From Octopus bimaculoides (lineage: Eukaryota), in the NCBI RefSeq assembly GCF_001194135.2, contig NC_069004.1:2083968-2147967 (forward strand): 64,000 bases of DNA, written 5' to 3'. The notes below the pieces were generated by a model that was not told where the DNA came from, did not search any database, and saw only the letters and a program-made list of their open reading frames with translations. Below are positions 1 through 57,502 of this stretch, one piece after another. Positions within the stretch are counted from its first letter, which is position 1; each line of letters begins with the position of its first letter. The position numbers and the translations under genes are program-made.

Positions 1-1084
1 TATTTGAATTACTAGTGTGACAAAACAATGGCTCAACCTTTCTGTATTGAAATTATCAATTAAAGGCTATCTTCATAGTATTAGCAGGGATGTAGGAAAC
101 GTAATGTATTTGGAAATTCCTTCTCCAAAACATTAATGAACTTTACCGAAAATAACTGCAATGGGAACCTAGATCGTAATAACAATTTCGCAGAAACCAT
201 GGGCAAAGCGGCATCCTAAGCAAGTGTGCTTTCCACGACTTTGTTTTTTTAATAACTTTCAGAGAAATTGATAATTTTAAATGATATTTTCTTCAGATAT
301 CTTTCAGATAGTGTTGATACTAATTATATTGGAGTTTAATGTGAAAAGAAAAAAAGAAAGAATGGGCGTACATACGTACAATGTTCACACGCATCACATA
401 CTTTTTTTCAAATTTTATTTTGAAGATAGATGTGATGTGCTAGTATGTTTGTGCGTGCGCCCAGCATTCTTTTTCACTTTAAATTCTGATATAATCGTAA
501 TATGCACCATCTGTAAGATATTTGTCGAAAATTTCATTGAAATCCATCCACTTCTCTGAAAGTTATGGGAGAAACAATGTCGAGAGGAAGGGCACACTTG
601 TGTAGGTGTGCTGCAGAAAAAAGTAAAAACAAAGATATAAAAATTAAGTTTCGTTCCGTCTTTCACAGTCTTACTTTTGTAGTGCATTTACAAATTAACA
701 TAACTTCTATGTAGTCTCATAAAACTGGGTATAAATCAGCATGCAGCATGTAAATAAATTGATGCTCGCTGTTTGTATTTGTTGTTGAGAAATAGGAAAC
801 TAAGGCTGATAGTTTGTAATATATCAGTTTGAATTTATCTGGTAAAAATACATTTTTTTTTCATTAACATTTGAGCAAAGCTAGTCGTTTCGCCTGCTTT
901 TTTTTTCGCCTTGTCCTAATTTTGCCTTATTCGCCTTCAAGTTTTACTTCTTTCGAATGTCTGCTCGTTTTGCGTGAAGTATCAGTGTCTTGCACATGCT
1001 GCCGTTGAATATACCGTACAAAGGAATATATATTTAGTTTATTTACATTTCTGCTGAAACATTTGCTACAGAGGTATTGTCACT

Positions 1085-1645
1085 ATGGCGAACGATTCGT
1101 TTCTTAATGTTAACCACGATTATAAGCTAAATAAAAAAAGGCAGACATTTAAACCGCGTCAGCCGGAGTATGAACTGGTAGTGACGACTAGAGGCGGACA
1201 ACTCTTGGCCTTAAATGGCTATTTGTTTCGTCTTAACTATAAACGTAAAGACAGAATTTACTGGAAGTGTAAAACATTGGGTTGTCTCTCTAGTGCTGTC
1301 ATGTCGAACAAACAAGAACTAATATCGTTTAGAGAAAACCACAATCACAGCAACGATCGGCCTTCCATACGTAACAGGTCGACTGCGAGTTCTTCGAAGA
1401 GATTACCAAAACCCGCGAGGCGTTTACTGAAAACCCCAAACATTGATGGGCTTCCGTTAAAATTCCAGGATGATCAGCAAAGTGCCCTTACTAACAGCAC
1501 ATCTCTACAGTTGGAACATGCCATCAAGACAGAAGTTGTTGCCGCTAACTTAATCTCCGCTTATGAATCTTCGTCCTACCTACCTGGAATTAACTGGGAT
1601 GCCAATCAACAAATCACAACTATTGCTGATGTCAAGTATGGGAAG
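1085..1645 (+). CDS. Variable 5' coding exon V1: FLYWCH zinc-finger domain (187 aa), predicted to splice to the BTB constant exons
   Basis: ATG at 1085 preceded by acceptor tttgctacag|1072, with an in-frame TGA at 1055. Translation ...TTRGGQLLALNGYLFRLNYKRKDRIYWKCKTLGCLSSAV...ENHNH matches the FLYWCH pattern (G-Y-x-F/Y, YWxC, C, HxH). Phase-0 donor AAG|gtatgt at 1645/1646. Confidence 0.82.
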
Positions 1646-2109
1646 GTATGTCAGGATAAAATTGATTATCATATTTGTGTTTTACATTACTTTCAAAACA
1701 ACGTCGTTATATTTTGCAGAGGAGGCCAGCGATTTTCTGGGTATTATTATTTCAAAACAGCGTGGTTGCACATGTCTTGGGAATGGTGACCCCTCCCCCC
1801 CCACTCCTCGCCAATCAATCGAAGTTTCAGTTCATACTCTGACATGAATAATTTTTGTAACCTGTTTCACTCAACAGAGAAACTATGGCATTTCATATAA
1901 GGCTGAGTTTGTAATTTTTATTTCTTTGAAGTATTTATAGGCATTAAAGGGTACTTATTTTGTAGAAGAGGCCAGGGATTTTCTGGGTGTTATCGTTTCA
2001 AAACAGTGTGGGGTAACACTTGTCTTGGGAATGGTGACGCGAGGTTTCATTCTATGCACTAACATAAATAATTTACCTAACAGGTTGCACTCAACTTCGA
2101 AACTATGCA

Positions 2110-2274
2110 CCGTATCTATTCGTGTATAAGTCGTGTAACAAATTCCGTATTAAATCACGGCACAAGATTTCTTCCATTCATAGTTTTAGCTTTGTCCCAC
2201 GTACAAGCCACACCCCAGTTTTTGAAATGAACATCAAATATAACATAATGCAATTGACATACGAGTAAATACTG
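2110..2274. mobile_element. Tc1/pogo(Tigger)-type MITE
   Basis: Degenerate TIRs ccgtatctattcgtgtataagtcg ... caattgacatacgagtaaatactg (reverse complement cagtatttactcgtatg). Confidence 0.45.
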
Positions 2275-2899
2275 ATTTCGTATAAGGCTGTGTTTGTAGT
2301 TTTTTTAACCTACAATCGTGACGTATTTATCATATAGGGAACTATTTCGTAGTCAACGGTTTTCTGGTAGCTGGTTCGTTTACCCATTAGTCAACCCCGT
2401 TACAGCAGACCAATGACCAAAGATGTTACAGACATAGTCATTCCGTATCTTGGACTACACTGTCCATATTATATTTCCCCTTTACCCACCACTTTCTGTA
2501 TAGACAGCAGGGTGTAATTTGAGGGACACTGATCAGTTATTTCTAACGAATCAAGACTCGTGAAGGCTTCTTTGTTGATTACTGCTGAAAATAGCTTGGG
2601 CATTGCAAGATAGTGCGATTATTTAGTGCAAAAAAGGAATATACTTTCAATTAGTTACTCTTTGTAAAGTAAGATTAGAAGTTATGTCAGACAAAATAAA
2701 AAGGTAGAAAAACCCCAGAGCTGTACTGTATTTTTAGACTAACCTTTATATGTATAAGGAAGATAAGGAAGGCACCTTGTCCTTAAGGAATTACTACTGA
2801 GATGCTTAGTCACCTGCATAGTAAATCAAGAAGTGCAGAAGGGTGTCATACACAATGACTTATGTAGCAGTCGTATTGTCAACTGTTGTAAGGGCAAAA

Positions 2900-3560
2900 G
2901 AGATACACCAGAGACAGGAAATTCCAGAAATGTAAAACTGTTAGACTAGTGGAACTCCATTGATGAGGAAGATAATTAACCTAGATGAGATGCTGATTAG
3001 TTTTGGGCTGAAAAGAAGTATGCTGACACCATATTCCTAGTGAAACAACTGAAAAGAGTGAATCCTCATATTTGGCATTTGATAGCATTCTACATTCTGC
3101 TGTATGGTGGTCACTGGGGGAACTTGGAGTAAATATATGGCTTGTGAGAACATGGTCTGTTCCAACAAGGAAGACATGAGCTGGAAAAGAGATTCTTGAG
3201 GGGTAATGTTTTAGGAAAAAAGGACTAGAAATAGTGGGGTTAGGGGTAGATGCAACTGAGGTAATGAGTGGGTGAAGGGTGTTCGAGTGATGGCTGTACA
3301 TAGCCAGTTGTTTCCAAAGGACAGAGGCTATTATAGTAGTAGTAAAGAAATAGAGGAAAAGGAGGCAGTATGCCTGTGAGTCAGATGTTGGAGTATGTGT
3401 CCATCAGTGAGTGGATGCAAGTGGATCTTCTTTGGCTGTGATCTAGGATGTCTGTGAAACAGCAACACCGTCTCAAATATAGGAGCAGTATTCCGTTGTA
3501 GGCTACTCCCTAGTTTTGTGGAGTGTCTGCTAGGATAGATCTTAGCAAAAAACAGTTAAA
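2900..3560 (-). mobile_element. Possible very old Penelope-like relic
   Basis: Purine-rich plus strand with minus-strand fragments such as HTPTSDSQAY (cf. HYKPTDSHSY) and NQHLI (cf. EQHLI). The similarity is weak. Confidence 0.25.
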
Positions 3561-4013
3561 CACCTCGGTTGTTTACTTGAGAATGGGGGTAAATGTGTGA
3601 GCAGACCGTGTGTGTCTGTGTTATAGGCCCGAGAATAGGGAGTGCAGCTGGTGCAAGCGCACCTTCCCCTAAAATTTTACAAATCTCTTACAAACCAGGT
3701 TTGTAAAAAACAAAATTTTGAACCTCAGTTTGCACACCCTAAGTAATTTTTTTCTCTCGTGTATATATGTGTGTGTGTGTGAGTGAGAGAGAGAGAGGAC
3801 TGTCTGTGNNNNNNNNNNNNNNNNNNNNNNNNNNNNNNNNNNNNNNNNNNNNNNNNNNNNNNNNNNNNNNNNNNNNNNNNNNNNNNNNNNNNNNNNNNNN
3901 NNNNNNNNNNNNNNNNNNNNNNNNNNNNNNNNNNNNNNNNNNNNNNNNNNNNNNNNNNNNNNNNNNNNNNNNNNNNNNNNNNNNNNNNNNNNNNNNNNNN
4001 NNNNNNNNNTACC

Positions 4014-4403
4014 ATGCCTCACGTATTTAACAGTATCCGCGGAGGGAAGAAACTTGTGGATGATATGAATTACATATATGAAATGCAGAAAAAAAATGCC
4101 GATGGATCTAAGACTTACTGGAAATGTGAAATTAGGTCTTGTAAAGCTCGAGTCCATACCATGACACGCGATGAATATTATACCATACTTAAGCGCGTTG
4201 GTGAACATCTTCATAATTCGTGTGCCTCAATGCCCAAAGTTCGCAAAACTTTAGCGGACCTGAAAGCACAAGCAGCTGCTTCCCAGGAATCTTCCCGTTC
4301 GTTAATTGCGACCATTTGTGAAAAGCTTGATGAAAATGAAATGGCTCTCATGCCTCCCTCTTCGTATGTAAGTCGCAATATAAGAAACTGGCGTCAGGCA
4401 AAA
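4014..4403 (+). CDS. Variable 5' coding exon V2: FLYWCH domain plus the helical linker of a MULE-type transposase (130 aa)
   Basis: MPHVFNSIRGGKKLVDDMNYIYEMQKKNADGSKTYWKCEIRSCKARVHT...GEHLH is a FLYWCH domain. It is followed by ...LADLKAQAAASQESSRSLIATICEKL...MPPSSYVSRNIRNWRQAK, resembling the post-FLYWCH region of animal MULE transposases. Phase-0 donor AAA|gtaagt at 4403/4404. The 5' flank lies in an N gap (3809-4009), so the true start is uncertain. Confidence 0.75.
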
Positions 4404-4550
4404 GTAAGTGGCCCCCCCAATCCCCTCAGAGTCGATTTGGTTTTATTGTATCTTTATTCAACGTTTTGGGGGTTTTTTCCTAACATCGAGGGTGAAATTG
4501 ATTGGCAGTCAAATTACCGAAGTCAAAATACCGGGTATCAAATTACCGGC
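4404..4550 (+). mobile_element. Decayed continuation and probable terminal repeat region of a Mutator-like (MULE) DNA transposon
   Basis: After the donor the frame reads VSGPPNP, and a shifted frame reads QSRFGFI, resembling the P-x-P...F-x-I linker of MULE transposases. Three tandem 12-mers gtcaaattaccg/gtcaaaataccg/atcaaattaccg lie at 4508-4519, 4522-4533 and 4537-4548. Confidence 0.5.
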
Positions 4551-4565
4551 TGAGACACATAACTC

Positions 4566-4857
4566 AAGGGTCTTCAACCCATTTTTTTTTCTATCTATAT
4601 TTTATTTTGGTGGACCCCCGTTGCCTTTCGATGATTAAAAACTAGTTTTATAGAAACTTTTTTCAAAATTCCCATTTTGTTTTTCACACATTGTGTAGTT
4701 TGAACCAGGTAGAGAAAGAACCTACCTGTTTCTTGCAATACGTAACAATACACACATCTAGATCAAAATGGTTTTCCAAGGGCCCCTAAAATACAATTTC
4801 CTATTTTGCTGCATGGATCCCCAAAAATCTTATATGGACCCTGCTTGTGAACCACTG
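4566..4857. mobile_element. hAT-type MITE
   Basis: Ends caagggtcttcaaccc ... gcttgtgaaccactg resemble cagtggttctcaac/gttgagaaccactg hAT TIRs. Confidence 0.4.
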
Positions 4858-6962
4858 CACAATGTTTATCAGGCGGTCCACACTATTAAAAGAAAAAAAA
4901 ATCGAAGGTAATTTTTCATTATTTGCGCCATTTCGGATTGCCCATGCCTGACCAAAACCTTTCATTTTGGAATAATCGTCTCTTAAAAAAAAAAAATTTT
5001 TTAAGACTCTAACAGATACAGTATATTTGGGTCGACACTGTACAATGCTTTTCCCTGTTCGTTTTAAAGACAGTGGGATGTGATATGAGTTTAAGTTAGC
5101 TGTTATTTCTAGTTAGCCAACGAGGGAGTTTCAATATTGCACTTTACCTGCTAGAAATAACAGTAAAACTTCACTCATATCATCGTCTTGAAGATAAAAT
5201 AGTCCTGGATAATGGATAGTCCTAGATAAGCTATTTCTGAATAACGGGCAAATATAACGGATATAGCTGTTTGAATCCTTTTGTCAAATGACTGCGATCA
5301 GTGTTGAATGGGGGTTGAAATAACAACAAAAATATAGTTCTTGAGACGAAAATGCATGTTCGAAGTTTCGATTAATTTAGCTTTCGTGTCTCGAGGCTTC
5401 GAATAGCGACTATAGTACCGTGTTCTAAAACAGTGGAAGTATTTGATGTCCAACTATAATCTGGAAAGAAAGAAGGGAAAAAGAAAACCCAACAAAAGAA
5501 TATTCTAATATTCAAGAGTAGTTAGTTGTCTTGTGATAGATTAAATAATGTGTTATCGATTAGTTTATGATGATAATAATGCAGTTTGTGTGATACGATG
5601 GGTGTGAGAAGAGACACTAAGCGTGCGGCACTATATAAAGTTAAGAGTTTCTACTGGAGACGTAGGTAGAAGACTACTACTATTCTATTAGCAGGCTGTA
5701 TTGTTGTATGTGGATGGAAGGCGTGAGAGACAGGCAAATAAACTAGATTATGGTGAACAAGTTGGAGCAAAATCCTGCTCTATATCGCTTCTCCCACTCT
5801 TGTGTGTGTGTGTGTGCATGGAGATTGGCACTAGTGTGTCTTCATCATTAGATAGATGTGTATCTCACACTAACACACACACACACAATGTTATTTCGTA
5901 TTTTCAGAGACATGAAACTGATTGTAACTCGTGTTTAAATCTTGTGTGTATTAAATATTTATCTCTCACTGGATGGAGTACTTGTCTTGTTGATATCACC
6001 AACAACGAAGCAGTACATCTCTCTCTCTCTTTCTCTCTCTCTCTCTATCTCTCTCTCTCTCTATCGTGTGTGTATTTGGTACTTCGTAACTTCAACAGTG
6101 TTCCAAACCTGGGTCACTAATGCTGATCAGTAACTAGGTCACTGTAGTTAGAAACACATAATCACTTTTCTAATTCACTTATTGTTTATCATAATACGTG
6201 TTAATGTAGTAGTAGTAGTAGTAGTAGTAAACGGTTTTTTTATGATATTCATGCTTTTTGCTTGTTTTTTTTCTTATTGTTTATGTTTTATATATATCTT
6301 GAATCTACTCTTCCTATAATTCACGAAGTTTATAATCCTGACCAAAACGCCAATATAGATGGTTCACAGAATATTGTTTGCAGCCAATATGAATTAAGTA
6401 TAAATATTTGGGGGGTTGTTTCTGTGTGTGTGCTGTGCGCGCGCGCGCAGCACACACTCTTTAACCGGACAGGTACTTGGTGCTCCAGTTTATGTCTGGT
6501 ATAATCAAACGGACGAACGGACCTCAGGTGTATCACACAGAACAATATGGAATATTTACCATATGCTATTTCGTAGGACAGCTGCATGTTTGACTAACTA
6601 TTCACCTCGTCAGCTGCTGTTATACTAAAGACAGTTAATAATTTGTTGAACCATACAGTTTTTATAATTTGATCGACTAATGGACAAAGTAACAAAATAA
6701 GATGCTTTATAGATATTTTAAGAATAACAAACTCCTTATTCTGTTGTTACACGCTTCAGTCATTGGATTGCAACCAAAATGAAGCACCACCTTCACGGGT
6801 TTAGTCAAACAAATCGACCCCAGTGCTTATTTTTATAGTCTGGTACTTTTCTTTCAGTTCCTTTGGCTGAACCACTGTTATACGGACGTAAACAAACCAA
6901 CACTGGTTATCTAGTGGGTGGTGGCAATGACATACCCAGAGAGACGAACACACATCTGTCTG

Positions 6963-7005
<43 letters not shown>

Positions 7006-7269
7006 AGAGAGAGAGAGGGTGAGGGTGAATTTGGTGGATAGAAACTGTGTAGAAGGTCTAACAAGGAATTGGTCAACTGGGAGCTATAGCAGAAGACATT
7101 TGCCCTTCCTAACACCAACCATTTTACAGACTGTACTATGGGCTTTTTATGTGGCACCTTGATTTTAGGATCTCAGTTCTGTTGTGGTGGGCGGGTCTTC
7201 TCAAGTACAACAATATATATATTAACTGATCCTCCTAAATTTTACCCAGAACCAGTATTTATTCAACAC

Positions 7270-7421
7270 CCCCCTCGTGTGTGTGTGTTTATATATGTAT
7301 GTGTATATATATATATGTGTGTGTGTGTGTGCATGTATATATATGTGTGTGTATATATGTGTGTGTGTATATATATATATGTGTGTGTATGTATATATGT
7401 ATGTATACATATGTATGCATG

Positions 7422-7452
<31 letters not shown>

Positions 7453-7493
7453 ATATATATAAATGTATAAATAAATATGTATATATATAAATG

Positions 7494-7525
<32 letters not shown>
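7270..7525. repeat. Compound (TA)n/(TG)n microsatellite flanking an assembly gap (N 7526-8290)
   Basis: Read directly from the sequence. Similar blocks at 8720-9015, 44880-45130 and 47850-48310. Confidence 0.95.
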
Positions 7526-8344
7526 NNNNNNNNNNNNNNNNNNNNNNNNNNNNNNNNNNNNNNNNNNNNNNNNNNNNNNNNNNNNNNNNNNNNNNNNNNN
7601 NNNNNNNNNNNNNNNNNNNNNNNNNNNNNNNNNNNNNNNNNNNNNNNNNNNNNNNNNNNNNNNNNNNNNNNNNNNNNNNNNNNNNNNNNNNNNNNNNNNN
7701 NNNNNNNNNNNNNNNNNNNNNNNNNNNNNNNNNNNNNNNNNNNNNNNNNNNNNNNNNNNNNNNNNNNNNNNNNNNNNNNNNNNNNNNNNNNNNNNNNNNN
7801 NNNNNNNNNNNNNNNNNNNNNNNNNNNNNNNNNNNNNNNNNNNNNNNNNNNNNNNNNNNNNNNNNNNNNNNNNNNNNNNNNNNNNNNNNNNNNNNNNNNN
7901 NNNNNNNNNNNNNNNNNNNNNNNNNNNNNNNNNNNNNNNNNNNNNNNNNNNNNNNNNNNNNNNNNNNNNNNNNNNNNNNNNNNNNNNNNNNNNNNNNNNN
8001 NNNNNNNNNNNNNNNNNNNNNNNNNNNNNNNNNNNNNNNNNNNNNNNNNNNNNNNNNNNNNNNNNNNNNNNNNNNNNNNNNNNNNNNNNNNNNNNNNNNN
8101 NNNNNNNNNNNNNNNNNNNNNNNNNNNNNNNNNNNNNNNNNNNNNNNNNNNNNNNNNNNNNNNNNNNNNNNNNNNNNNNNNNNNNNNNNNNNNNNNNNNN
8201 NNNNNNNNNNNNNNNNNNNNNNNNNNNNNNNNNNNNNNNNNNNNNNNNNNNNNNNNNNNNNNNNNNNNNNNNNNNNNNNNNNNNNNNNNNCATCATCATT
8301 TAACGTCTTTTGTCCATGCTGGTATGGGGGTTTGTCTTTGTGCT

Positions 8345-8530
8345 TGTTCCCCACCACTGCTTGACAGCCGTTGTTGGTGTGTTTACGTCCTCGTAATCTA
8401 GCGTTTCGGCAAAAGGGGCCGGTAGATTAAGTACTAGGCTTACAAAGGATAAGTCCCGGGGTCGATTTGTTCGATTAAAGGCGGTGCTGCAGCATGGCCG
8501 CAGTCAAATGATTGAAACAAATAAAAGAAT
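8345..8530 (+). mobile_element. SINE-like family C 3' body (ggtgtgtttacgtcc...gcatggccgcagtcaaatgattgaaacaa..aaaaga)
   Basis: Recurs at about 40762-40955 (+), 56975-57135 (+), 6745-6935 (-), 13690-13850 (-) and 32045-32165 (-). Confidence 0.7.
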
Positions 8531-8971
8531 ATATATATATATCATGAACATTAAATTAATTGTTTGATATCATTTTTAATTTCTGGAAGGAAAATGCTGA
8601 GAGTGACTTCGAAGTTTTGGCTGACAATCTAATGCGTGAGCCGAAACTTCGAAATCACAGTTAACTATTTTCCAACAGAAATACACACAATCGCGCGCAC
8701 ACACACAATATAGAGGTAATATTTATCTGTCTATATATGCACGTACGCACACACACAGCCGTACGTAGTCTGTGCATTTATATATACATATGCATACATA
8801 AACATATATATATAAATACACACACACACACACATTTATACATATGCATACATAAACATATATATATATAAATACACACACACACATACATTTATACATA
8901 TGCATACATAAACATATATATAAATATATACATGCATAGATACATATATCTGTCTATTTCTTTCTTTCTCT

Positions 8972-9014
<43 letters not shown>

Positions 9015-9233
9015 GCACCAGCTTAATAATAATTAGTAAAATTATATTGAAATGGTCATTTAATAATTATTTCTTCAGTTTTGGCTACATTGCCAATCTA
9101 TGATAACATAGTTATTTCTGTAAATATATCCTACTTCTGAAGGAATACGTATTCTACCCCCCTCCTCGTTTTGTCTTCCTCAACGTTTAATTAGTTAACT
9201 AACTAGCTGACTTGTGTTATTGTCTGTAGTTGG

Positions 9234-9259
9234 GCCGCCATTCTATCGTCATGGCGGAC
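9234..9259. promoter_or_regulatory. Inverted pair of YY1-like motifs (GCCGCCATT / CATGGCGG) upstream of exon V3
   Basis: gccgccattctatcgtcatggcggac in a locally CpG-enriched stretch of otherwise AT-rich DNA. Confidence 0.35.
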
Positions 9260-9557
9260 TAATCTTATATTTTTTTTTCTTTTGTGAGTGAAGCGGTCAG
9301 CAACATATAAGGATATAGTGATGTGTATGATAGACTGAGAGAGATAGTGGGAGAGGTGCTATCGACTATTAATTTGCTTCTTTGCTTTCTTTAACAACGT
9401 ATAAGCAGAGTATTCCCAGAAATATATAGCTGTGTGAAAAAATTACAAGGAGAAAAAAAATCCGTGCAACTTTTATATAAATCTGTAATATTTATTTGGC
9501 TTCTATAGTGTTGGGGCACTATGTCTTCTCGTAGTGCTCACTACGCATCTATGTTGC

Positions 9558-9569
9558 CGTGACGTCACG
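9558..9569. promoter_or_regulatory. Perfect palindromic CRE (cgTGACGTCAcg) just 5' of the V3 start codon
   Basis: TGACGTCA at 9560-9567 inside a 12-bp palindrome. Confidence 0.4.
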
Positions 9570-9606
9570 CTACTAGAACGTAGTGCCGTGCGGAAGAAGG
9601 TTACTA

Positions 9607-10914
9607 ATGGCTTCCAATCCACTAGATTCGTCGTCGCCGACTCCTCCGCCGTGCACTTCTACTGCAAACTCTCTGCTTGCTAGCACTAACATTCCTTTAC
9701 AATCGGCTGGAGTTATTCACGAAGATGTCCCTCTATTGGTCATGCCTCCACCATCGAAAGAACCCCAGCAGTATGACAGTAAAAAAACGAAAGAAGCCAC
9801 CAAGTACAGCGCGAAAATATTCCGTGACTTCTGCCATAGCCGTGGCATCAATACTGCCATTGAAGATATGGCCAAGAGTGAGTTGGATGAACTGCTCTCT
9901 GACTTTTACATCAATGTCCGTACACAAGGCGGTCAGTTTTATAGTTTTTCATCGTTAGTTGCACTTCGCCATGGACTAAACCGTTACCTGAAAACTGTGA
10001 ACATCGTCAACGACCCGGCATTCCGTAAATCGAACATGTCGTTTAAAGTAGCTTTGAAACGACTGAAAGAAGCTGGCAAAGGGTCGATTGAACACAAAGA
10101 GCCGATCAGTCAGGCTGACATGGCTACTCTCTATTCCCATAGCCAGGTGTTTAACCCCAACACACCAGAAGGCCTTCTCAATAAGGTCTGGTTCGAAATT
10201 ACATTTTATTTCTTTCGTCGGGGACAGGAGAACCAACGCTATCTCACCCCTCACCATTTTGGTTTTAGTACGGATGAATATGGTCGAAAATACGTTTACA
10301 AACGGAAATCATTGTCTCAATACACCAACGGATGTAATATCGAATCGAACAGCTCGCCGTTATCTCCAGACTCCAGTCGCAGTGCGAGAATGTATGCTAC
10401 AGGTAATGCCGTATGTCCAGTGGCCACGTTCGAGCGCTACCTTCGTAAGCGAAACCCGCACGAGTTAGCTCTGTTCCAGCATCCTCGGACCACATCCTTC
10501 CAGGACTCCATCTGGTATAATGCATCTCCACTAGGAAAAGAAGCTTTGTCCACGATGATGAAAAGGATAGCGCTTACAGCCAAACTCTCTCGTGTCTATA
10601 CAAACCACTGCATCCGTGCAACCGCGAAGTTCGTCCTCTTTCAGGTGTTCGATGCATTTCAGTTCGATCCCCAGCAAGGTACTAGCAGCTCTTTGACGAC
10701 ACCCTCTCAGTCGCTTGCTTTGCCCGGTATCAGTTCGATATCTGGTCTAAACACCCTGTCGTCCCATGAAATGCAGGCGACCCACGATGCAAACGCGGGT
10801 TCCATAAATTACAGCCCGCACCCGTCGGGTCTGCGTGTGTCAATGGTACAGAGCGATACTGACAACGCTTTCCCCCACCTGCCTAATTTGAGTGAAATCG
10901 CTCTGAACCGACAG
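9607..10914 (+). CDS. Variable 5' coding exon V3: DUF3504 / Crypton tyrosine-recombinase-derived domain (KIAA1958/ZMYM/QRICH1/KCTD1-like), 436 aa
   Basis: ATG at 9607 with in-frame TAG at 9574. Motifs TKEATKYSAKIFRDFC, LDELLSDFYINVRTQGGQFYSFSSLVALRHGLNRYL, LLNKVWFEITFYFFRRGQENQR, CPVATFERYLRKRNP, WYNASPLGKEALSTMMKRIA and YTNHCIRAT are typical of DUF3504 proteins. Phase-0 donor CAG|gtaagt at 10914/10915. Confidence 0.85.
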
Positions 10915-12645
10915 GTAAGTGCTTGTTTTCGTGTTCCTATCATCCGCTTAAAATACCTGGTCCTCAATATTAAATCCTGGCAAGATTTGTTTTGTGTTCG
11001 TGTCATCATGGTGGGGCACACACATACACACTTCACCCCGCTCCCTGTGTTTATACATCTGCACCTTTTATATACACCTGTCGACATACATATACACACA
11101 AGTGCCTTTGTTTATATTAAATACAATTTCGAAAATGTTATTTAAACTATTTTCTTTTTAACAACCAAAATATTTCTGAATTGCAAATTTATTGGAAAAG
11201 TATCTTTTGTGTTTCTATAATACATATGTTGTATAATTTAATAATGCAGTGTTTAATATGTTGTATAATGTGGTGTCTTTGGTTTTACTATATTCACAGT
11301 TGATATATTATACCATATTTAATGTGTCTCTGAGCATTGATCACGTTTTCAATAGTTTATTCATCTTTTGTTTATATAGTTCTAGAAAACAACTGTAAGA
11401 TGGTGATATTTTAACGTGCGTGCGTGTGTGTGTGGTGTAGGTATATATATATATATATATNNNNNNNNNNNNNNNNNNNNNNNNNNNNNNNNNNNNNNNN
11501 NNNNNNNNNNNNNNNNNNNNNNNNNNNNNNNNNNNNNTGTGTGTGTATATATATATATATGTATATATATATCGAAAAATTTACCTATATATCTACACAC
11601 ACACACACACACACTATAAGTGGTTGGGTAAGGAGACCTTATAATTAAAGGTGTTCCCGCAATGACCATTCCGTCTTCTCGGGCATTTCGTATCCCAGAT
11701 TATATATCCAATATGTTCCCCACCTTTTTTAAAGGCAACTTTTTTTTGGTTGCTATCTCTAGTAGGTCGAGTCCTCTTGTAGAGGGGACCCATCGTTGAT
11801 CTGTGTGTGTGTGTGTGTGTATTTATATGTGAGGTGGTGTAAGGGGTTTCGTATTTGATTCGTTACTTGCCGTATGTCTTCATACATCACTGTTTTTGTT
11901 TACATTTTAACAGAGGTTGACAAAGAAAAGCGACTTGCTTAAGAGGTAGTTCTTCAAATATATATCTGCTGTAGCTTAACGATTTTTAAAGAAATTTCCA
12001 ATTATTGATCTTCTTAGATGATTGATTTCTATAGTAACACTGATTTTAGAACCCTTCAGAAATTCAATTCCCTGATGTTATTTTCATAGAACAAGAGCAA
12101 AATGTCTATCTAAACTTGGGTGAGTTTTTTAACTTCCTTTTTTCCCCAAAAAATTTATGTTAAACCGATAGAAACTCTTCGGTTAAGTAACGATAGAAAT
12201 CTAATTAAACAAATCTATATTTTATAAAGGAAAGGGAGTATCTCAATTGAACCGATCCCTCTTGTTTTATCGATTTTTGGTAGGGTTGCGTTGAAAACTC
12301 GTCGATTCTGGCGAGATTTGAATGAAGCTGATTTCAGTTATTGTGAAGCATTTTATGTAATTTTTGAAATTCTGTGCAAATGATACAAACAATGATCGTC
12401 GTTTATTGAAGCTTCAGTTTTAAAGGGTGGAAATAAATTCTGTTTTGTAAGCAAAACTGGGTTTGTCGACTCGATTCATCGAGAAGAACTCGGCACCGCA
12501 GTGCGTCACCCCCAAACACAACACCATTTGAGGACGGCGGTTGGATGGCATAGACACAGGAAATAACGAGTACGGGTACGAAAGTACCGCGAGTAAAATT
12601 ATAGAAATATAATTTTGATCAAGTCAGTCTCTTGTTCCTCTGCAG

Positions 12646-12663
12646 GTACCACAGGCTCTTCAG
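12646..12663 (+). CDS. Candidate in-frame microexon (VPQALQ) with a GC donor; an alternative longer form ends at 12702
   Basis: Strong acceptor ctcttgttcctctgcag|12646. CAG|gcaagt after 18 nt matches the GC-donor consensus, and a second CAG|gcaaga follows after 57 nt. Both lengths are multiples of 3 and stop-free in phase 0. Confidence 0.35.
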
Positions 12664-15600
12664 GCAAGTTATGGTTTTCTTGAAGACCCGGTGCACCCAC
12701 AGGCAAGACTCAGTAGGAAGGGACTGGCTCAATCAAAATTATATATATATAATCTCTATTATTGTATTGAGTCACCTGTTTCCAACAGTCAATACTAAGT
12801 GGTGTGTGTGTAAGGTAGAATCGATTTTATCCATCAACTTCCATGTTGGTTTTTTGGGTTTTTTTAAAAAATTCTTTCATGCTTCTCGTTATTTTGGATC
12901 CTACTTGATAACAGAAATGCTATCTGTCTTGCTTATACATCATTGTCTCCATACTGTAGGTAGTTTATTTACTTGGCTAAGCCTAGCGGATAGATCGGTG
13001 AAGTTTGGCATATTGTTGAATCCTCAGTTAATCAATTACGTGTAAAATTAATTGATTTTAAAATTAAGATTCGGGTTATCTATATTAAAACATCGGCGTT
13101 TGATTCGTTACAGTACTATGCTGTTTTAATATTTGTCGAATCAACTCCTAATAAAAGAAATTAAAATGTACCCGTACACACAGTGAAAGAACTGCTGGTA
13201 CAATCATATATATACGAGCGAGTCAGGGAATGTTACCTATCACTTGACTAACTTAATTTTCTTTATTTCAGTCGGTATATATATATGTATGTAATTTTGA
13301 TGATAGATAAAACTTAAACAAAATCAAGAAAGAATTGCCGTATTGAGCGGGCCAACAATTTAACGGTTGCTAGTGTTGGTGAAAAAAAAAAAAAAAAAAA
13401 AAAANNNNNNNNNNNNNNNNNNNNNNNNNNNNNNNNNNNNNNNNAAAAGAAACACACGCCCGAAAGATAAATGAAATTATTTTATGGGGTTAAATATTAA
13501 AAGATAGGATAATGAAGTATTTACGTTGGCAAATTATGTTGATAACATTCGCGAACAGCTTGTATGTGTGACAACACGCTTCTTTAAAATAAGTTTTGGG
13601 AAGAAAAAAACGAAGAAAAATGTGACAAAGATAATTGTTTTATTTTATTGTCATAAATGTCTCAGATCTTTTACTTGTTTCAGTCACCGGGCTATGGCCA
13701 TGCTAGAGCATCACCTCGAAGGGTTTAGGCCATCAAATCGACCCCACTTTTTATTTCTAAGCGTGGTTCACTTCTTATTCTGTCGGTTTCTTTTGCCGAA
13801 CTGCTATATTACGGATGACGTAAACAAACCAACGCTAATTGTCAAGAAGTAGGGGTGGGGACATCACCGCCACCACTACCATCATCATCATCATCAAGGA
13901 TAAGTCTATTGTTCAACCCTTGCATGGGTTTGACGGAATTTTTTGTTCAGGTAGATCTTCAATGATTCCATTGCTCACAACTCCCCTTGTCTCTCCTAGA
14001 CCAAGATGACTGATATAGAAGCCTAGTATCTCAAATGAACTCCCCAAAAACCTAGTGTGGAGCAACAGAATATTAGTGATAAAACAGTAAACAGGAGGAC
14101 ACCATAGAGATGACGTGCTGTTGACTATCTGGACATTATAAAAAAAAGAAATGCAAAAGGCAGCGTTGTACCACATATGGTAAACTACTTCTTGCTAAAG
14201 CGTACAGTGTGTTACTCTGAAGCTGCTTGGAATATCTGGATTGCTGGAACTGGAAGTTCACATCTGGTTGAAAATCTTCAATTGATCATGATGCTACAGT
14301 AGGTGTAAAAAGATAACTTTTATTTGGATAAAAACTACTAAATTGTGTTTCTTCTGTGAATAGAATCAATTCAATTTTGATGAATCTTTACATTTCCTTT
14401 CTGATATGTAAAGACAGTGAGATACGCTTAATCCTAAAGCATTTCTGCTTCATTCCTTATGGATAGGACTTTCAAGGGAAGTGGGATGGGGCAGTCCAAA
14501 AAACCACAATGGCTTTTTGTCAAGTCCAGGCTCATTTTAGCAATGCAATTGCTAAAATTACCACCTCCTTATATAGAGATACAGTATTGAAGAATTTATC
14601 TGGCTTGTTTATTTGTATTTGTGTACGAGTGGGATAGTGAAAATATTGTTCATTTTGTATTTCATTTACCTTTTCAAAGTATCTTGTGAGTAGTTCATTT
14701 CTTTGAAACAAAGGATTATTTTGTAATGCACCAGAACTTTCTCTCGTGAATCTTCATCAGATTTTTGGTTTCTTTTACTCTTTTCATTTGAATGGAAGCA
14801 TTTCATTTCATTTTTCAATTAGAAGGCTTTTTGTTTGTCTAGTTTATCCGGTTAAACGATTTGAGGTTATTTTCATCCTTGTTGTATGAAAATTGTTATT
14901 CTATCTTTGGGAATATTTTTAGGAAGCTTGCTTCTTCTCCTTGGAAAATATCTGAGTTTAGCTTGCATTAATGACATAAAATGCTTCAGTATCCTTTCGT
15001 TATCTTGCATACAACCTCTTTTAATCGGGCTGCTTGTTGTTGAAATGCTGAGCTATAAGGATCACATATTCTAGGTTTTGATCAGAGAAGATTATAGGGG
15101 TTATTCATTGCTATTTTAATGTATTCTACATTATTTGTGAAGAGGAGATTCAGTGTGGTGTTGGCTCTTAGTAAAGAGGACCATCAATGATGTTTACCAT
15201 TTTTCCAAATAAAATATGTGCAAAGGGAAGATAACTCCCGTTAGAACAATGGCTTGGAATCTGTGCCTGTTTTAAGCCAAGGTGCTGCACTGTGGGACTG
15301 AACCTGAAACCACATATGCGCCTATGTTAGAAATTTCTATTACTGTTACCATTAGTGGTATTAAGGTTTGTGGTTTTTATATTTTTGTTTATTTATATCT
15401 TGCTTGGTATTGGAGCCATTTGGATTGTTGCTAAAAATGTGGAGCTACCTGTAGATTCCTTGCAGTTGTAATGGTTGGCTGTTTACTTTATCAAGCTTAT
15501 GTAATTGTTATGGAGCTTTAACTGCAGAAGATCAGCCTGGAAATGTGTTGTGGCATAAAAGTTTAAAGAGATAAAAGACTGATTTGGTATGGTGGGATCA

Positions 15601-15779
15601 GCTGGTGGAGAGGTGGCTGCACATATGCTGTTAATGGATAACAACTAGATCGTTTGTCTTTTACTTTTGTTGGTCTCTTTTACTAAACTGCTAAGTTATA
15701 AGGATGTAAACAAATCAACACTAGTTGTCATGCAGTGAGGGTGGCAAACACACTCTCACCCTACCACACACGTTTATAC

Positions 15780-15925
15780 ACAATGGATTTCCACACAGTT
15801 TCCCTTGACCAAATCTACGCATAAAGCATTGGTCATCCTACAGCTATAATAAAAGACACGTGTTCAGGGTGCTGTGCAGTGGGACTGAACCTAAAACCAC
15901 ATGTTTTTAGAGCAAGCTTTTAAAC
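15780..15925 (-). mobile_element. SINE family A copy
   Basis: Reverse complement of the family A sequence (gtgggactgaacc...aagcattggtc). Confidence 0.65.
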
Positions 15926-16136
15926 CACAGAGCCATCTACAACTTCTTGAATGTGCAAGATGTGATGTTTTGACATGGAATCACTTGGATGAGATAAACA
16001 AAGGATCAAGTCCTGCTGTACAGCAAACCAGCCCCTCCTAATCAACAATATGTAAAAACGACAGTGGTGAGGATGGTGGTATTATTTTTGTAGATTTGCT
16101 TATGTATTCTCACTGGATTGTTTGTTTAATTTGCAG

Positions 16137-16282
16137 GAGGCAATGGAGGTTCAGTCAGCTGTAGCTGCAGCCACTGGCACTATTATTGGTCAGCCTGAAG
16201 TTGAGACTTATGAACCAGAACCAGTACACACAATCCAAAATTCCAAGATAAGAATAAATCAGGAAAAAGATTTGTCCGTAAG
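16137..16282 (+). CDS. BTB gene constant exon C1 (EAMEVQSAVAAATG...QEKDLSVS)
   Basis: Acceptor tttaatttgcag|16137, open in phase 0, internal ATG at 16143. Donor AG|gtaaga is phase 2, matching the next exon. Confidence 0.75.
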
Positions 16283-16305
16283 GTAAGAATATTATCATTA
16301 TTATT

Positions 16306-16530
16306 AAGGCAGCGTGCTGGCAGAACCATTAGCACACTGTGCAAAATGCTTAGTGGCATTTTGTCTGTCCTTATGTTCTGAGTTCAAATTCCACCAAGGT
16401 TGACTTTGTGTTTCATCCTTTTGGGGTCAATGAAATATGTACCAGTTACTCACTAGGGTCAGTATAATCAACTAGCTCCCTCCCCTCAAATTTCAGGCCT
16501 TGTGCCTACAGTAGAAAGGACTATTATTAT
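16306..16530 (+). mobile_element. tRNA-derived SINE family B (aaggcggcgagctggcagaa...ctttcatcctttcggggtcgataaa...agtacc)
   Basis: B-box gagttcaaattcc. The central motif resembles the conserved domain of Deu/Nin-type SINEs (tentative). Confidence 0.7.
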
Positions 16531-16980
16531 TGTTATATAATTGCAAATTTGGGTACAAAAATGGGGGAACATTTGGAGTACTAGAGCAGGTGGGGGTGGA
16601 GAGTGATCTTGTTCTTCACCAAAAGTCAGATAAGGAATGATGCACGAGTTGTTGCATTGTCATGGTGCAGCATCTAGGTTTTGTTTGTCTCATATGCCCT
16701 CCTTTGTACTGTCTCCCTCTAATTCCTCCGGACAAATGAATAAGACTCTTTATTGATCATCTGGCTGCATCAAACAAACTTATGATGACCGACACCCTTC
16801 CCATGAAAACCTTATCATGACCACTTTCATATTAGAGTGAGCTCAACATAATGTTTTTGGCTGTGGTGGTGATCCAGCATTCATTGCAGTACAGGTAAAT
16901 CAGTAACTAACATATAGATGTGTGTGTTGATGAAAACATAGACAATGGTATTTATGTTAATCTCTCATTTGTATCAACAG

Positions 16981-17131
16981 CTTTTCCGCTTCTTCCCGCC
17001 CTGCAACCATCTTCAAAAAAACCTATGTCGATCCAGAACATGCAGATGGTATGATGAAATCATTGGCAAGTTTATGGAGGAAGAGGCGTTTATGTGATGC
17101 TAAAATTTGTAGTGGAAATAAAAATGTGATT
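16981..17131 (+). CDS. BTB gene constant exon C2, N-terminal part of the BTB/POZ domain
   Basis: Acceptor gtatcaacag|16981 (phase 2). Translates to ...YVDPEHADGMMKSLASLWRKRRLCDAKICSGNKNVI, the canonical BTB start (H...L..L...LCD). Donor ATT|gtaaga is phase 0. Confidence 0.85.
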
Positions 17132-17257
17132 GTAAGAATATTTTATTTATTTTTTGCTTTTAAAGATTATCTGGAATTTAATTTTGTTAGTGTTGTTTGT
17201 AAAAAAAAAAAATGTCTTGGAAATCATACTTTGTCTCATTATTTAGTTTTTGTTGAT

Positions 17258-17530
17258 AAGGTGGTGAGCTGGCAGAATTGTTAGCTTATCATTATAGCTC
17301 TTGACATTTTGAGTTCAAATCCCACCAAAGTCAGCTTTACCTTTCATTGTTTTGGGGTTGATAAAATAAACACCAATTGAGCAGTGGGTTCATTGTAATC
17401 AACTTATCCCTCTCCCCCTAATATTGCTGGCCTTGTGCCAAAATTTGAAACCTTATTATTATTAAGGCGAGCTGGCAGAATCGTTAGCATGCCAGGCAAA
17501 ATGCTTTGTGGCATTTTGTCTGTCCTTATT
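17258..17530 (+). mobile_element. SINE family B copy plus a second 5' fragment
   Basis: aaggtggtgagctggcagaattg... and aaggcgagctggcagaatcgttagc. Confidence 0.7.
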
Positions 17531-17754
17531 CCAGCATGAAAAGTGGATGTTAAACGATGATGATGATTATTATTAGAAATTGTATTAAAAAAAATTAACA
17601 TATTTTGTGTATTGCAGAAATATAACCAATTTATTGCACATAAATTTTAACAACAAAATCTTACATGGGTCCCCAGTTGAGAACCACTGCTATAAATCTA
17701 GATGACTAATTATTTACAGTATTTCTTATGGAGTGTTATTAATTTCTTTTCCAG

Positions 17755-18687
17755 TTACATCGTTTGGTTCTGTTTGCTGCCAGTCCTCACTTGATGGAAA
17801 AAAATATTACCGATGGTGCTGACTTGGAAGTGAATCTTCCACCAGGGATTAGTGAAGATGGACTGAAAATATTTGTCAGCTTTCTCTATGACGGTGTCCT
17901 TAATCTTAACGAACATCTGTATAAGGATGTCGAACGAATATCTAATCTGTTAAAAGTTGATAAAATTCAGAAACACTGCCGAGAGTTTGCTGCCAGTCTA
18001 AACGAACACAAGCAAATGACCAGCTCCCCGTCGACGTTGACGCCACGCCACCGAGATTCTCTTCCCAAGTCACAGAGTAATCGTCAAACAGTGGTATTGA
18101 CATTGAGTGATGATTCTAATCCTGCTGATGTAGCTTTTGACAACCAAGAACAGAATGTAGGTTTGTCGCATTCTCACCTGGAAGAAGTTCATAATTCACT
18201 GCTCGATGAGAGGATTCAATCTCTAAACGAACAGCATAATTATTTAACCTCTCACCAAAATCAGTTTCCTTCCACTTCCCAAGCCTCTTCCATGTCTCTA
18301 CAGAGTAGCAGTTCAGTCAGTGCCATTCCTTCTGAATGTGGTATCAAAACTGAACCAATTGAGATCTTAGACGATGACGTTACAGACTACAATCTATCTC
18401 AAGAGGACATTAAACAATGCAAACCCAGTATCAATCAGAGTGGCAAAGGTTACTCGGACGACAGTTCCAACTCGGAACCCCATAGACGATCATCTCAAGG
18501 GCACATTTCAAGTAAGGTTACAAGAACTTATATGACACCTAGTAAATGTGAATCAGGCATAGAGTTGGCTCCAATGGAAAGTATTTCTACTTGTGCCACC
18601 ACTGGGGCATCACCCTATCCAGTCAGTTTAGTAGCTTCATCTGGAGAGACGTTCCCACTTTATACCTTATCGTCCAATCAATCCTGA
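17755..18687 (+). CDS. BTB gene terminal constant exon C3: rest of the BTB domain plus a Ser/Gln-rich tail, stop at 18687
   Basis: Acceptor tttcttttccag|17755. LHRLVLFAASP...ISEDGLKIFVSFLYDGVLNL...VERISNLLKVDKIQKHC matches the ZBTB/Tramtrack-type BTB (HRxVLxAxS, F.Y.G.L). No C2H2 or other finger motif occurs before TGA. The three constant exons total 409 aa. Confidence 0.88.
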   Translation, partial: LHRLVLFAASPHLMEKNITDGADLEVNLPPGISEDGLKIFVSFLYDGVLNLNEHLYKDVERISNLLKVDKIQKHCREFAASLNEHKQMTSSPSTLTPRHRDSLPKSQSNRQTVVLTLSDDSNPADVAFDNQEQNVGLSHSHLEEVHNSLLDERIQSLNEQHNYLTSHQNQFPSTSQASSMSLQSSSSVSAIPSECGIKTEPIEILDDDVTDYNLSQEDIKQCKPSINQSGKGYSDDSSNSEPHRRSSQGHISSKVTRTYMTPSKCESGIELAPMESISTCATTGASPYPVSLVASSGETFPLYTLSSNQS

Positions 18688-28628: not shown

Positions 28629-29705
28629 CTGAGGGAAAATAGAAAAGAGAGGAAGTCAAAGATCTCCTTAAGTAATAAAGACAATGCTTTATATTATTGG
28701 GTTAAAAATTGTCAAACATTGAGCTAGCATTTATGCAGAGGTCATAGCTTACCACAAATCTTGTAGTGCATCTCTGAGTAAAGCTTTAGACTGCTTAGCA
28801 AGAAACTAGACACAATGATAAAGTACACTGCTAAGTGTAATCTATCCATCCATCTTCTCCACTCATTATTCTTGGAAGGGTTGCGAGAGTTGAGTCCTCA
28901 GGCACCTTCTCCATAGGGTCCTTTTAGAAGCGACCATCATTACACTTTCTGGCTGGATTCCCAAGCGTGACCAACTGAAACCATGGCCATTACCCAACCA
29001 TCTTGCCCTTGGTCTACTCCTAAGTCTCTTGCTGGCTGGCTTGGTTTGAAGAATCTTCCTGCAACATTCTAATCACATGCCTACAATATTGCTGCTGTAA
29101 CCTCTCAATGTGGAGAAGTAGGTATAATAAGGTATAAATTCAGTTTACGTAAACCTACGTAGTAGACACACAAACAGGTCAAATTTACCTCATTCTCTGT
29201 AGACAGAAAAAATGATGAGCAGTCTTAATGATTTTTCAATCCTTACTAGGGTCTACTCAGAGGTGCTGTGTCTATGTCACTTGTTCCAGTCCCAGAGAAA
29301 GAAGCCATTTTGTTTGTTACACACATCAAACGTTGTAGCTTCAGAGAAACGGGGTTACTAATTTGCATATCCTTAGTGTTAGTGCTGTGTAATATTCTCA
29401 ATGAATGAATTTCTGGGTGATACATCATCAGCATATTATCGAAAAATGATATCACTTTTGATATATAATAAGTGCTTAATTTATCATACTTTCTATAAGG
29501 GATATCACTGATTATTCTATTCAGTGTCTCATAGAATCCACTAAAGTATTGTCTGATTTAAAATTACATTCAGTTAAATAAAAATATTTACTCCAGTGCT
29601 AGAAACAGAAAACCTGAACAGAAGATGTAAAATTTCATAAAGTAATTATTTCATAAACTTTGTCAGTGTATGGTACATTTCTAGAATATTCTGAATAATA
29701 CCTAC

Positions 29706-57200: not shown

Positions 57201-57502
57201 GTTGTTTATGTTAAGTCCCCTTATGTCTGTTTACCTAACGGTGCGACAAATAGGAATCGGTGAAAATGTATCAGACTGAAATAATGAACATATTCAATCA
57301 AGTCGGTCTCGGTCGTTTTTTCGGTCAGATACACCTTCACCGTTCATATATTTATACACACACACACACACACACACATACACCGGCAACGTGTAATACT
57401 CTCCTGTTTTAGCGGTAGTTATCTGCCCTTAGGCACAGTTATTGCTGGTTTGTTTTTCCTGCAATTAACGTTTTGACTTTTAAAATAATTTTAACTTTAG
57501 AA

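Follow-up and report, generated by a model that had tools for sequence, protein, structure and literature searches.

An octopus BTB gene with a DUF3504 first coding exon, a second head documented in gene models and further candidate heads

Introduction

In jawed vertebrates, a Crypton insertion made an alternative first exon of KCTD1 that encodes a DUF3504 domain and is spliced to the BTB exons, yielding isoform b (PMC3212892, Kojima & Jurka 2011). Fusions of host genes with transposases by alternative splicing are mostly single captures, in which the transposon typically contributes an acceptor and the transposase lies downstream of the host exons (Cosby et al., bioRxiv 10.1101/2020.05.07.082677). 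Other systems in which one constant part is combined with variable parts are Drosophila lola and mod(mdg4) and the protocadherin and UGT1A arrays. Here we describe a gene of Octopus bimaculoides, LOC106883396 (LOC115223832 in O. sinensis), for which KCTD1 isoform b is the closest precedent. It was studied in a 64,000-nucleotide (nt) stretch of the chromosome-scale contig C24 (2083968-2147967), called the window below; positions given without a contig are those of the window.

A preliminary description of this DNA had proposed that three 5' coding exons, V1, V2 and V3, are alternative heads spliced onto one constant BTB module, exons C1-C3. We find a multi-head BTB gene in which two heads are documented: V3, for which there is an exact protein match and complementary DNA (cDNA), and U0/U0b, which lies outside the window and is documented at the gene-model level. 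For V1 and V2, our searches found no record of a junction with C1. On balance, we favour with some reserve the reading that this is one complex gene, in which several alternative 5' coding heads, mostly derived from mobile elements, are joined to C1-C3.

Results

V3 is spliced to the BTB exons

V3 (9607-10914, plus strand) is a first coding exon of 436 codons that encodes a DUF3504 domain, a derivative of a Crypton tyrosine recombinase, and it ends at a phase-0 donor, CAG/GTAAGT (a slash marks the splice junction here and below). The constant exons follow on the same strand. C1 (16137-16282) has a phase-0 acceptor, tttgcag/GAG, and a phase-2 end; C2 (16981-17131) encodes the first half of the BTB domain; and C3 (17755-18687) encodes the remainder of the BTB and a low-complexity tail of ~250 amino acids (aa), with the stop codon at 18685-18687. 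None of the exons is interrupted by an assembly gap, and around all four gaps in the window the flanking sequence is colinear with that of O. vulgaris and O. sinensis. The preliminary description held up in its coordinates, frames, donors and acceptors and in its predicted lengths of 596, 539 and 845 aa for V1, V2 and V3, respectively, joined to the constant part. Its domain assignments also agree with Pfam, which returned FLYWCH for V1 (4.6e-12) and V2 (4.3e-8), DUF3504 for V3 (4.7e-11, together with a weak QRICH1 match) and BTB for the constant part (8.3e-10).

The product of V3 and C1-C3 is identical, letter for letter, to XP_014789876.1 (UniProt A0A0L8FH54) and is only a few residues apart from XP_029650369.1 (O. 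sinensis/vulgaris), which is isoform X1 of LOC115223832. The junction, NRQ/EAMEVQ, is present in all DUF3504+BTB orthologues, including that of Argonauta hians (871 aa). In two Logan contigs from more distant cephalopods (L004 and L005; 4.2 and 3.2 kb), the whole open reading frame (ORF) has the same junction, with a constant part that is 68-73% identical. Because the ORF runs uninterrupted across the junction on contigs of 3-4 kb, these contigs represent spliced mRNA. Between O. bimaculoides and O. sinensis, the ratio of non-synonymous to synonymous substitution rates (dN/dS) is 0.03 for V3 and 0.04 for C3, within a range of 0.03-0.05 for the fusion. We conclude that the fusion transcript exists and that the fusion is under purifying selection; the joining of V3 to C1 is virtually certain. 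An optional micro-exon that had been suggested at 12646-12663 has no counterpart in any of the orthologous proteins, nor is it conserved in Argonauta.

At their 5' ends, both cDNA contigs align colinearly with the genome 5' of the V3 ATG. Since they run colinearly through the leader (9217-9606, plus strand), V3 transcripts start upstream of it, and given these 5' ends and the strong conservation of the upstream region, we conclude that V3 has a promoter of its own. The last ~105 nt before the ATG are almost invariant across all five cephalopod sequences, including the distant cDNA species, a level of conservation far above that of synonymous sites. Within this stretch (9500-9606) are a perfect CRE (TGACGTCA) and ACTACG/CGTAGT repeats in inverted orientation, and it may serve as a promoter, as a structured leader of the RNA, or as both. 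A candidate acceptor, the AG at 9507-9508, is present between the upstream stop and the ATG. We considered an N-terminal extension of V3 through this acceptor and rejected it, as none of the three frames entered at 9509 stays both open and in phase up to the V3 ATG.

The constant part encodes a BTB of the PF00651 type

The only BTB-type match in the constant part is to Pfam PF00651. The 43 PDB matches at E<0.001 comprise gigaxonin, ZBTB17, BCL6, BACH1/2, KLHL and similar proteins, with no TTK-type chain among them, and the nearest solved BTBs are those of gigaxonin, ZBTB17, BCL6 and BACH1. Judged by these relatives, the octopus BTB is of the BCL6/BACH1/gigaxonin type, and neither of the TTK nor of the KCTD T1 type. 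The TTK group of BTBs has been described as specific to Arthropoda (PMC11426971).

As in KCTD1 isoform b, DUF3504 is encoded by a single upstream first coding exon, stands N-terminal to the BTB, and is old and highly conserved. Unlike KCTD1 isoform b, whose BTB is of the T1 type (BTB_2), the octopus gene carries PF00651, and it has at least one further head, with up to three more candidates. Because the octopus BTB is not of the KCTD T1 type, the DUF3504-BTB fusion arose independently, by convergence.

C1 is conserved in Argonauta, in O. sinensis and in a cephalopod contig from ENA. It has an in-frame ATG 6 nt from its start, at 16143, in the context GAGGCAATGG, which is kept in all cephalopods. 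A paralogue of the constant part is found on the minus strand of another O. bimaculoides contig (G000:C11, ~71977129-71979700), with a C2-like segment at 53% and a C3-like segment at 35-40% identity; within 30 kb upstream of this paralogue there is no homologue of V1, V2, V3 or U0.

A second head, documented in gene models, lies 5' of the window

The coding range of the O. sinensis gene (genomic sequence L001) begins 29 kb upstream of V3, exactly at the ATG of an exon that we term U0. In the DNA upstream of the window, where the preliminary description had suggested looking for more ATG-to-phase-0-donor exons, we found U0 and a second ORF, Vc. In O. sinensis U0 comprises 195 codons with a phase-0 donor, AAT/GTAAGT; in O. 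bimaculoides it is located 5.2 kb upstream of the window (C24 2078742-2079329). Its product is integrase-H2C2-like: the match to Integrase_H2C2 (E=0.001) is below the Pfam cut-off, and the UniRef name is KRBA2-like. U0 is single-copy in O. bimaculoides, has a dN/dS of 0.046, and loses its frame by decay past the donor. A block ~1.1 kb 5' of its ATG is conserved.

In gene models of both Argonauta (P0171) and O. vulgaris (P0175), U0 is spliced to a mini-exon, U0b, which is phase 0 at both ends (L001 17254-17310 in O. sinensis). U0b measures 57 nt in Octopus versus 51 nt in Argonauta, and its frame is thus kept. The 623-aa product of O. sinensis U0, U0b and C1-C3 is exactly XP_029650370.1, a gene model designated isoform X2 of LOC115223832. 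RefSeq therefore holds two isoforms of this gene, X1 (V3 and the constant part) and X2 (U0, U0b and the constant part), that have unrelated N-terminal modules and identical C1-C3. At the level of gene models, U0/U0b probably joins C1. No match to U0b was found in O. bimaculoides. A gap of 1034 N (G000:C24 2082934-2083967) abuts the first base of the window, and the O. bimaculoides U0b is probably within it.

Vc lies between U0 and U0b (L001 13451-13909), 1.9 kb upstream of the window. It has an ATG, 153 codons and a phase-0 end at ATA/GTAAGC, and it encodes a putative CENP-B/pogo helix-turn-helix (HTH), an assignment read from the sequence and from the annotation of an Argonauta ORF, not from a Pfam scan. 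Vc is intact in both Octopus species (dN/dS 0.23). Argonauta has a different CENP-B-HTH ORF between V1 and V3, which also ends in phase 0; the two ORFs are ~30% alike by eye and occupy different positions. In O. sinensis, the Vc segment is present twice in tandem (L001 12490-14363 and 15420-16618), the second copy of Vc being 92% identical with indels, and there is one copy before the gap in O. bimaculoides. The tandem reflects either a genuine duplication or an error of the assembly.

V1 is a conserved FLYWCH exon

V1 (1085-1645, plus strand) extends for 187 codons from its ATG to a phase-0 donor, AAG/GTATGT. It is single-copy in the O. bimaculoides genome and has syntenic orthologues on the same strand in O. 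sinensis (97% aa identity), in Argonauta (56%) and in one ENA cephalopod contig, where it lies 70 kb upstream of C1-C3. The dN/dS is 0.06 versus O. sinensis and 0.18 versus Argonauta. In all three lineages the donor is in phase 0 (GTATGT in Octopus, ACG/GTAGGT in Argonauta, CAG/GTATGT in the ENA contig), a phase kept despite many indels, and it follows directly after the last conserved codon; the read-through tails beyond it, of 47, 4 and 11 codons, show no relationship to one another. By this pattern of conservation, V1 is a real coding exon under selection. A search of a representative library with V1 returned only genomic read-through ORFs of its orthologues and multi-FLYWCH proteins, with no fusion. 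These multi-FLYWCH proteins are its nearest relatives and, together with its single copy, they give no sign of a transposon origin for V1. The preliminary description had taken all three heads in the window to be transposon-derived, which fits V2, a member of a Mutator-like (MULE) transposase family, and V3, with its Crypton-derived DUF3504.

An element at 919-948 (plus strand, GCCTTATTCGCCTTCA), ~150 nt 5' of the V1 ATG, is unique in the window and falls within a block aligned with Argonauta; it is non-coding and is a candidate promoter or leader element of V1. The conserved non-coding blocks upstream of V1 and U0 suggest that both have promoters of their own; for V2 and Vc no comparable sign of a promoter was seen. 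The preliminary description had inferred promoter choice in the style of the protocadherins. No promoter element shared among the heads, of the kind known from protocadherins, was found upstream of them: there are no notable shared 9-mers, and the CRE/ACTACG motifs occur at V3 only.

The in-frame stops upstream of the V1 and V3 ATGs, from which it had been argued that these are alternative first exons, are indeed present. They do not exclude chaining by themselves, as there are candidate AGs at 9507-9508 and at 1070-1071. The AG at 1070-1071 is not conserved, being CGG in Argonauta, and in Octopus it is in the wrong phase; we therefore rejected chaining of U0b to V1.

Outside the cephalopods, the closest relative of the V1 FLYWCH is encoded by a 199-aa ORF on a Logan contig of SRR5025426 (L031, 1151 nt). 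In this ORF the FLYWCH is followed by a MULE-like linker and then by ...HQYP/EAMEMQS. The DNA at this point, GAGGCAATGGAGATGCAGTC, is identical to the first 20 nt of C1 (16137-16156) at 18 of 20 positions, after which the similarity ends and no BTB follows. This could be a FLYWCH-to-C1-type junction in another lineage, or chance.

V2 derives from a MULE transposase

V2 (4014-4403, plus strand) encodes a FLYWCH domain in 130 codons and ends at a phase-0 donor, AAA/GTAAGT. It is related to crustacean and insect transposases that combine FLYWCH with MULE, and the homology passes through the donor (WRQAK/VSGPPNP here versus WRQAKVSAPPIP in the relatives). In O. bimaculoides, the family numbers at least 150 copies dispersed over the genome, most of which contain stops. 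Because other genomic copies carry AAAAGTAAGT and their homology continues past the donor, the GTAAGT donor of V2 is ancestral transposon sequence. From these similarities, V2 clearly stems from the 5' end of a MULE transposase.

V2 is absent from the Argonauta locus. In O. bimaculoides and O. sinensis its ORF is intact, with a dN/dS of 0.18 (p=1e-5; 12.5 non-synonymous and 16.5 synonymous changes), and the frame is lost just past the donor. V2 thus looks to have been exapted within Octopus. The O. vulgaris protein CAI9739954.1 (98 aa) could be reconstructed exactly from an internal ATG of V2, its donor joined to the acceptor at 9508/9509, 17 codons and a stop.

The region just 5' of V2 falls in an assembly gap (3809-4009) that ends 4 nt before the ATG and has flanks colinear with O. 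vulgaris (L002 2579-2838 and 3062-3499). The O. vulgaris counterpart, ~223 nt in length, keeps the V2 frame open for 44 codons 5' of the ATG with no earlier ATG. It has an in-frame stop 132 nt 5' of the ATG and a possible in-frame acceptor, cttaaag/AGA, 18 nt upstream of the ATG. Since the gap hides both the upstream stop and the possible acceptor, the 5' edge of V2 is unread in the O. bimaculoides assembly.

The heads share phase and selection

We counted ORFs that start with ATG, have at least 120 codons and end at a phase-0 GTAAG, GTATG, GTGAG or GTAGG. The window has five on the plus strand, all of them in V1, V2, V3 and C3, and one on the minus strand. Base-shuffled versions of the window gave a mean of 0.01 such ORFs per shuffle, indicating that the pattern on the plus strand is beyond chance. 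All six of the independently arisen 5' exons (U0, Vc, V1, V2, V3 and the CENP-B-HTH ORF of Argonauta) end in phase 0. This uniformity favours C1 as their target, because the frames at 9509 are all closed and phase would be irrelevant there. Between O. bimaculoides and O. sinensis (dS ~0.23), all heads are under purifying selection, and conservation stops at each donor.

We then looked up 24 hypothetical products for exact matches to protein records. These included V1, V2, U0 and Vc each joined directly to the constant part; U0+V2, V1+V2 and Vc+U0b joined to it; the BTB-only product; versions with the 17-aa tail from 9509; U0+U0b continued into the AG at 1071; and the Argonauta V1 joined to the constant part. 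Only V3 with the constant part, U0+U0b with the constant part and the 98-aa O. vulgaris model exist. Homology searches, in which the constant part, V1+V2 and U0 served as queries, covered cluster representatives within a length band.

Other features of the window

A large exon of a RabGAP-TBC gene (26260-28701, minus strand) is convergent with the BTB gene. This neighbour is shared with O. sinensis and O. vulgaris and coincides with a GC-rich, GC-skewed stretch at 26-28 kb. Further downstream, at 57419-58954 on the plus strand, an open frame of 511 codons encodes an acidic/basic N-terminal region followed by a repeat-like C-terminal region; on inspection by eye, it looks similar to a UTP18-like nucleolar protein with WD repeats.

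Discussion

We propose the following arrangement. C1-C3 encode a classical dimerising BTB with a long disordered tail, and each first coding exon, having its own ATG and a phase-0 end, is compatible with the phase-0 acceptor of C1. Splicing of V3 to C1 gives the main, 845-aa product from the promoter directly upstream of V3, and splicing of U0 through U0b to C1 would give isoform X2, as in the gene model of the sister species. V1, V2 and Vc may be further heads of the same kind. The outcome would be a small family of BTB proteins that have a common oligomerisation/effector body and differ in their DNA- or chromatin-targeting heads. New heads would be recruited by insertion of transposons upstream of C1, using donors that the transposons bring with them, such as the GTAAGT of V2.

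Several observations weigh against this proposal. Protein records that join V1, V2 or Vc to C1 are missing for both O. bimaculoides and O. sinensis, and the same holds for V1 in Argonauta. These missing records count against joining because NCBI isoforms are in the collection, where X2 was found. The silence of the homology searches on V1 with the constant part is weaker evidence, because such searches also missed X2, whose cluster is represented by a 309-aa fragment. V1 is in no gene model of O. sinensis, O. vulgaris or Argonauta, and we found no O. bimaculoides record with V1. The only model that uses the V2 donor, CAI9739954.1, takes it to an acceptor 98 nt 5' of the V3 ATG and then to a stop. 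The O. vulgaris and Argonauta models end or break off after U0b, and isoform X2 may be a partial model completed ab initio, as Gnomon can do. Lastly, the argument from phase is weakened by phase-0 introns being the commonest class. Taking all this into account, we put the joining of V1 to C1 at slightly short of an even chance, and consider that of V2 to C1 doubtful.

These same observations could mean that V3 with C1-C3 is the only real BTB protein at the locus. U0/U0b, Vc, V1 and V2 would then be small independent genes, or leader exons in long transcripts that either are spliced into the V3 leader at 9508/9509 or terminate close by, yielding short stand-alone H2C2, HTH or FLYWCH proteins, and isoform X2 would be a gene-prediction artefact. 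The V2-9509 model with its stop, the O. vulgaris and Argonauta models that go no further than U0b, and the missing V1, V2 and Vc records would be accounted for, and an unspliced V1 would end after only 4-47 further codons. However, the tail read from 9509 shows no conservation at the coding level: Argonauta has a +1 indel in it, and in both cDNA species a TGA follows at once. Moreover, mRNAs spliced to 9509 would have their stop far upstream of later junctions. Phase 0 in six exons, and the keeping of frame in U0b and in the variable tail of V1, would be left unexplained, and in three lineages GTATGT or GTAGGT stands right after the last conserved V1 codon. We regard this explanation as unlikely, though not negligible.

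It is quite improbable, in our view, that V2 (and Vc) are simply inert transposon remnants in the first intron, with ORFs and donors left over from a transposase gene. The size of the V2 family, its ancestral donor with homology beyond it, the absence of V2 in Argonauta, and the different positions and low likeness of Vc and the Argonauta HTH ORF are what one would expect of such remnants. Yet both ORFs are intact in two Octopus species at the low dN/dS given above, and their frames are lost just past the donors, whereas most other copies of V2 have stops. It is hardly more plausible that the main alternative product is BTB-only, a protein of 407 aa that starts at the ATG at 16143 behind non-coding 5' exons, with the upstream ORFs irrelevant. 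The conserved context of that ATG would suit such a product, and the BTB-only isoform a of KCTD1 is a precedent (PMC3212892), but the collection has no 407-aa protein of this kind from either O. bimaculoides or O. sinensis, and the selection that acts on the upstream ORFs would go unexplained.

Compared with known systems, the proposed multi-head gene has features of several. As in lola and mod(mdg4), one BTB is shared by isoforms with different DNA-binding modules, and FLYWCH is found at the locus. Unlike in these genes, where 3' exons or trans-splicing supply the variable part, the variable part in octopus is 5' and N-terminal and is selected by the choice of promoter or first exon; the heads come from unrelated families, and FLYWCH-BTB joining is a candidate only. 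Of the reversed mod(mdg4)/lola put forward in the preliminary description, the reversed order and the shared BTB stand, whereas the BTB itself is not of the TTK type. A conventional lola-like arrangement is also seen in molluscs: two oyster proteins (P0009 and P0010) have ~570 N-terminal residues in common, including a BTB, followed by Ets in P0009 or C2H2 in P0010 ('glass-like isoform X3'). The oyster BTB is only distantly related to that of octopus.

Like the host-transposase fusions, the locus has a transposase DNA-binding domain in its own exon and a splice site carried by the transposon (the GTAAGT of V2), followed by purifying selection, and the mode of capture would fit joining to a host regulatory domain through alternative splicing. 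It differs in that several different elements lie upstream at one locus, would use donors, and are in a mollusc. With the protocadherin and UGT1A arrays it shares a tandem arrangement of same-strand first coding exons that all have an ATG and a donor of their own, two or more of which join common constant exons. Unlike in those arrays, the octopus heads are non-paralogous (H2C2, CENP-B HTH, FLYWCH and DUF3504), U0 uses the extra mini-exon U0b, and the V3 leader has a candidate acceptor, which protocadherin exons lack. The interpretation given in the preliminary description is partly supported, and the locus is a variation on three known themes: the pattern of KCTD1 isoform b, the fusion of host genes with transposases, and a reversed lola/mod(mdg4). 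A survey of transposon-derived transcription factors reports Octopus THAP and CENPB proteins with BTB; the octopus multi-head locus is not described in the sections of that survey drawn on here (PMC10027918).

Taken further, the region upstream of C1 might act as a 'landing pad', where any inserted mobile-element fragment that encodes a DNA-binding domain and brings an ATG and a phase-0 donor in the right orientation would become a new head of the BTB. U0, V1 and V3 would then have been kept for hundreds of millions of years, V2 and Vc would be specific to Octopus, and the pogo HTH would be specific to Argonauta. One gene would encode at least five promoter-selected BTB transcription or chromatin factors, a mirror image of lola/mod(mdg4). 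We offer this as a tentative reading, and think it more doubtful than probable.

Two findings hold however cautiously the locus is read: in its DUF3504-BTB fusion, the gene has a clear convergent counterpart to KCTD1 isoform b of vertebrates, and V1 is a strongly conserved FLYWCH exon that has been overlooked by every annotation examined. If the extra heads do join the BTB, a single gene would display the assembly of transcription factors by repeated transposon capture, and the logic of lola and mod(mdg4), one oligomerisation domain with many DNA-binding domains, would have arisen independently, and in reverse, in cephalopods.

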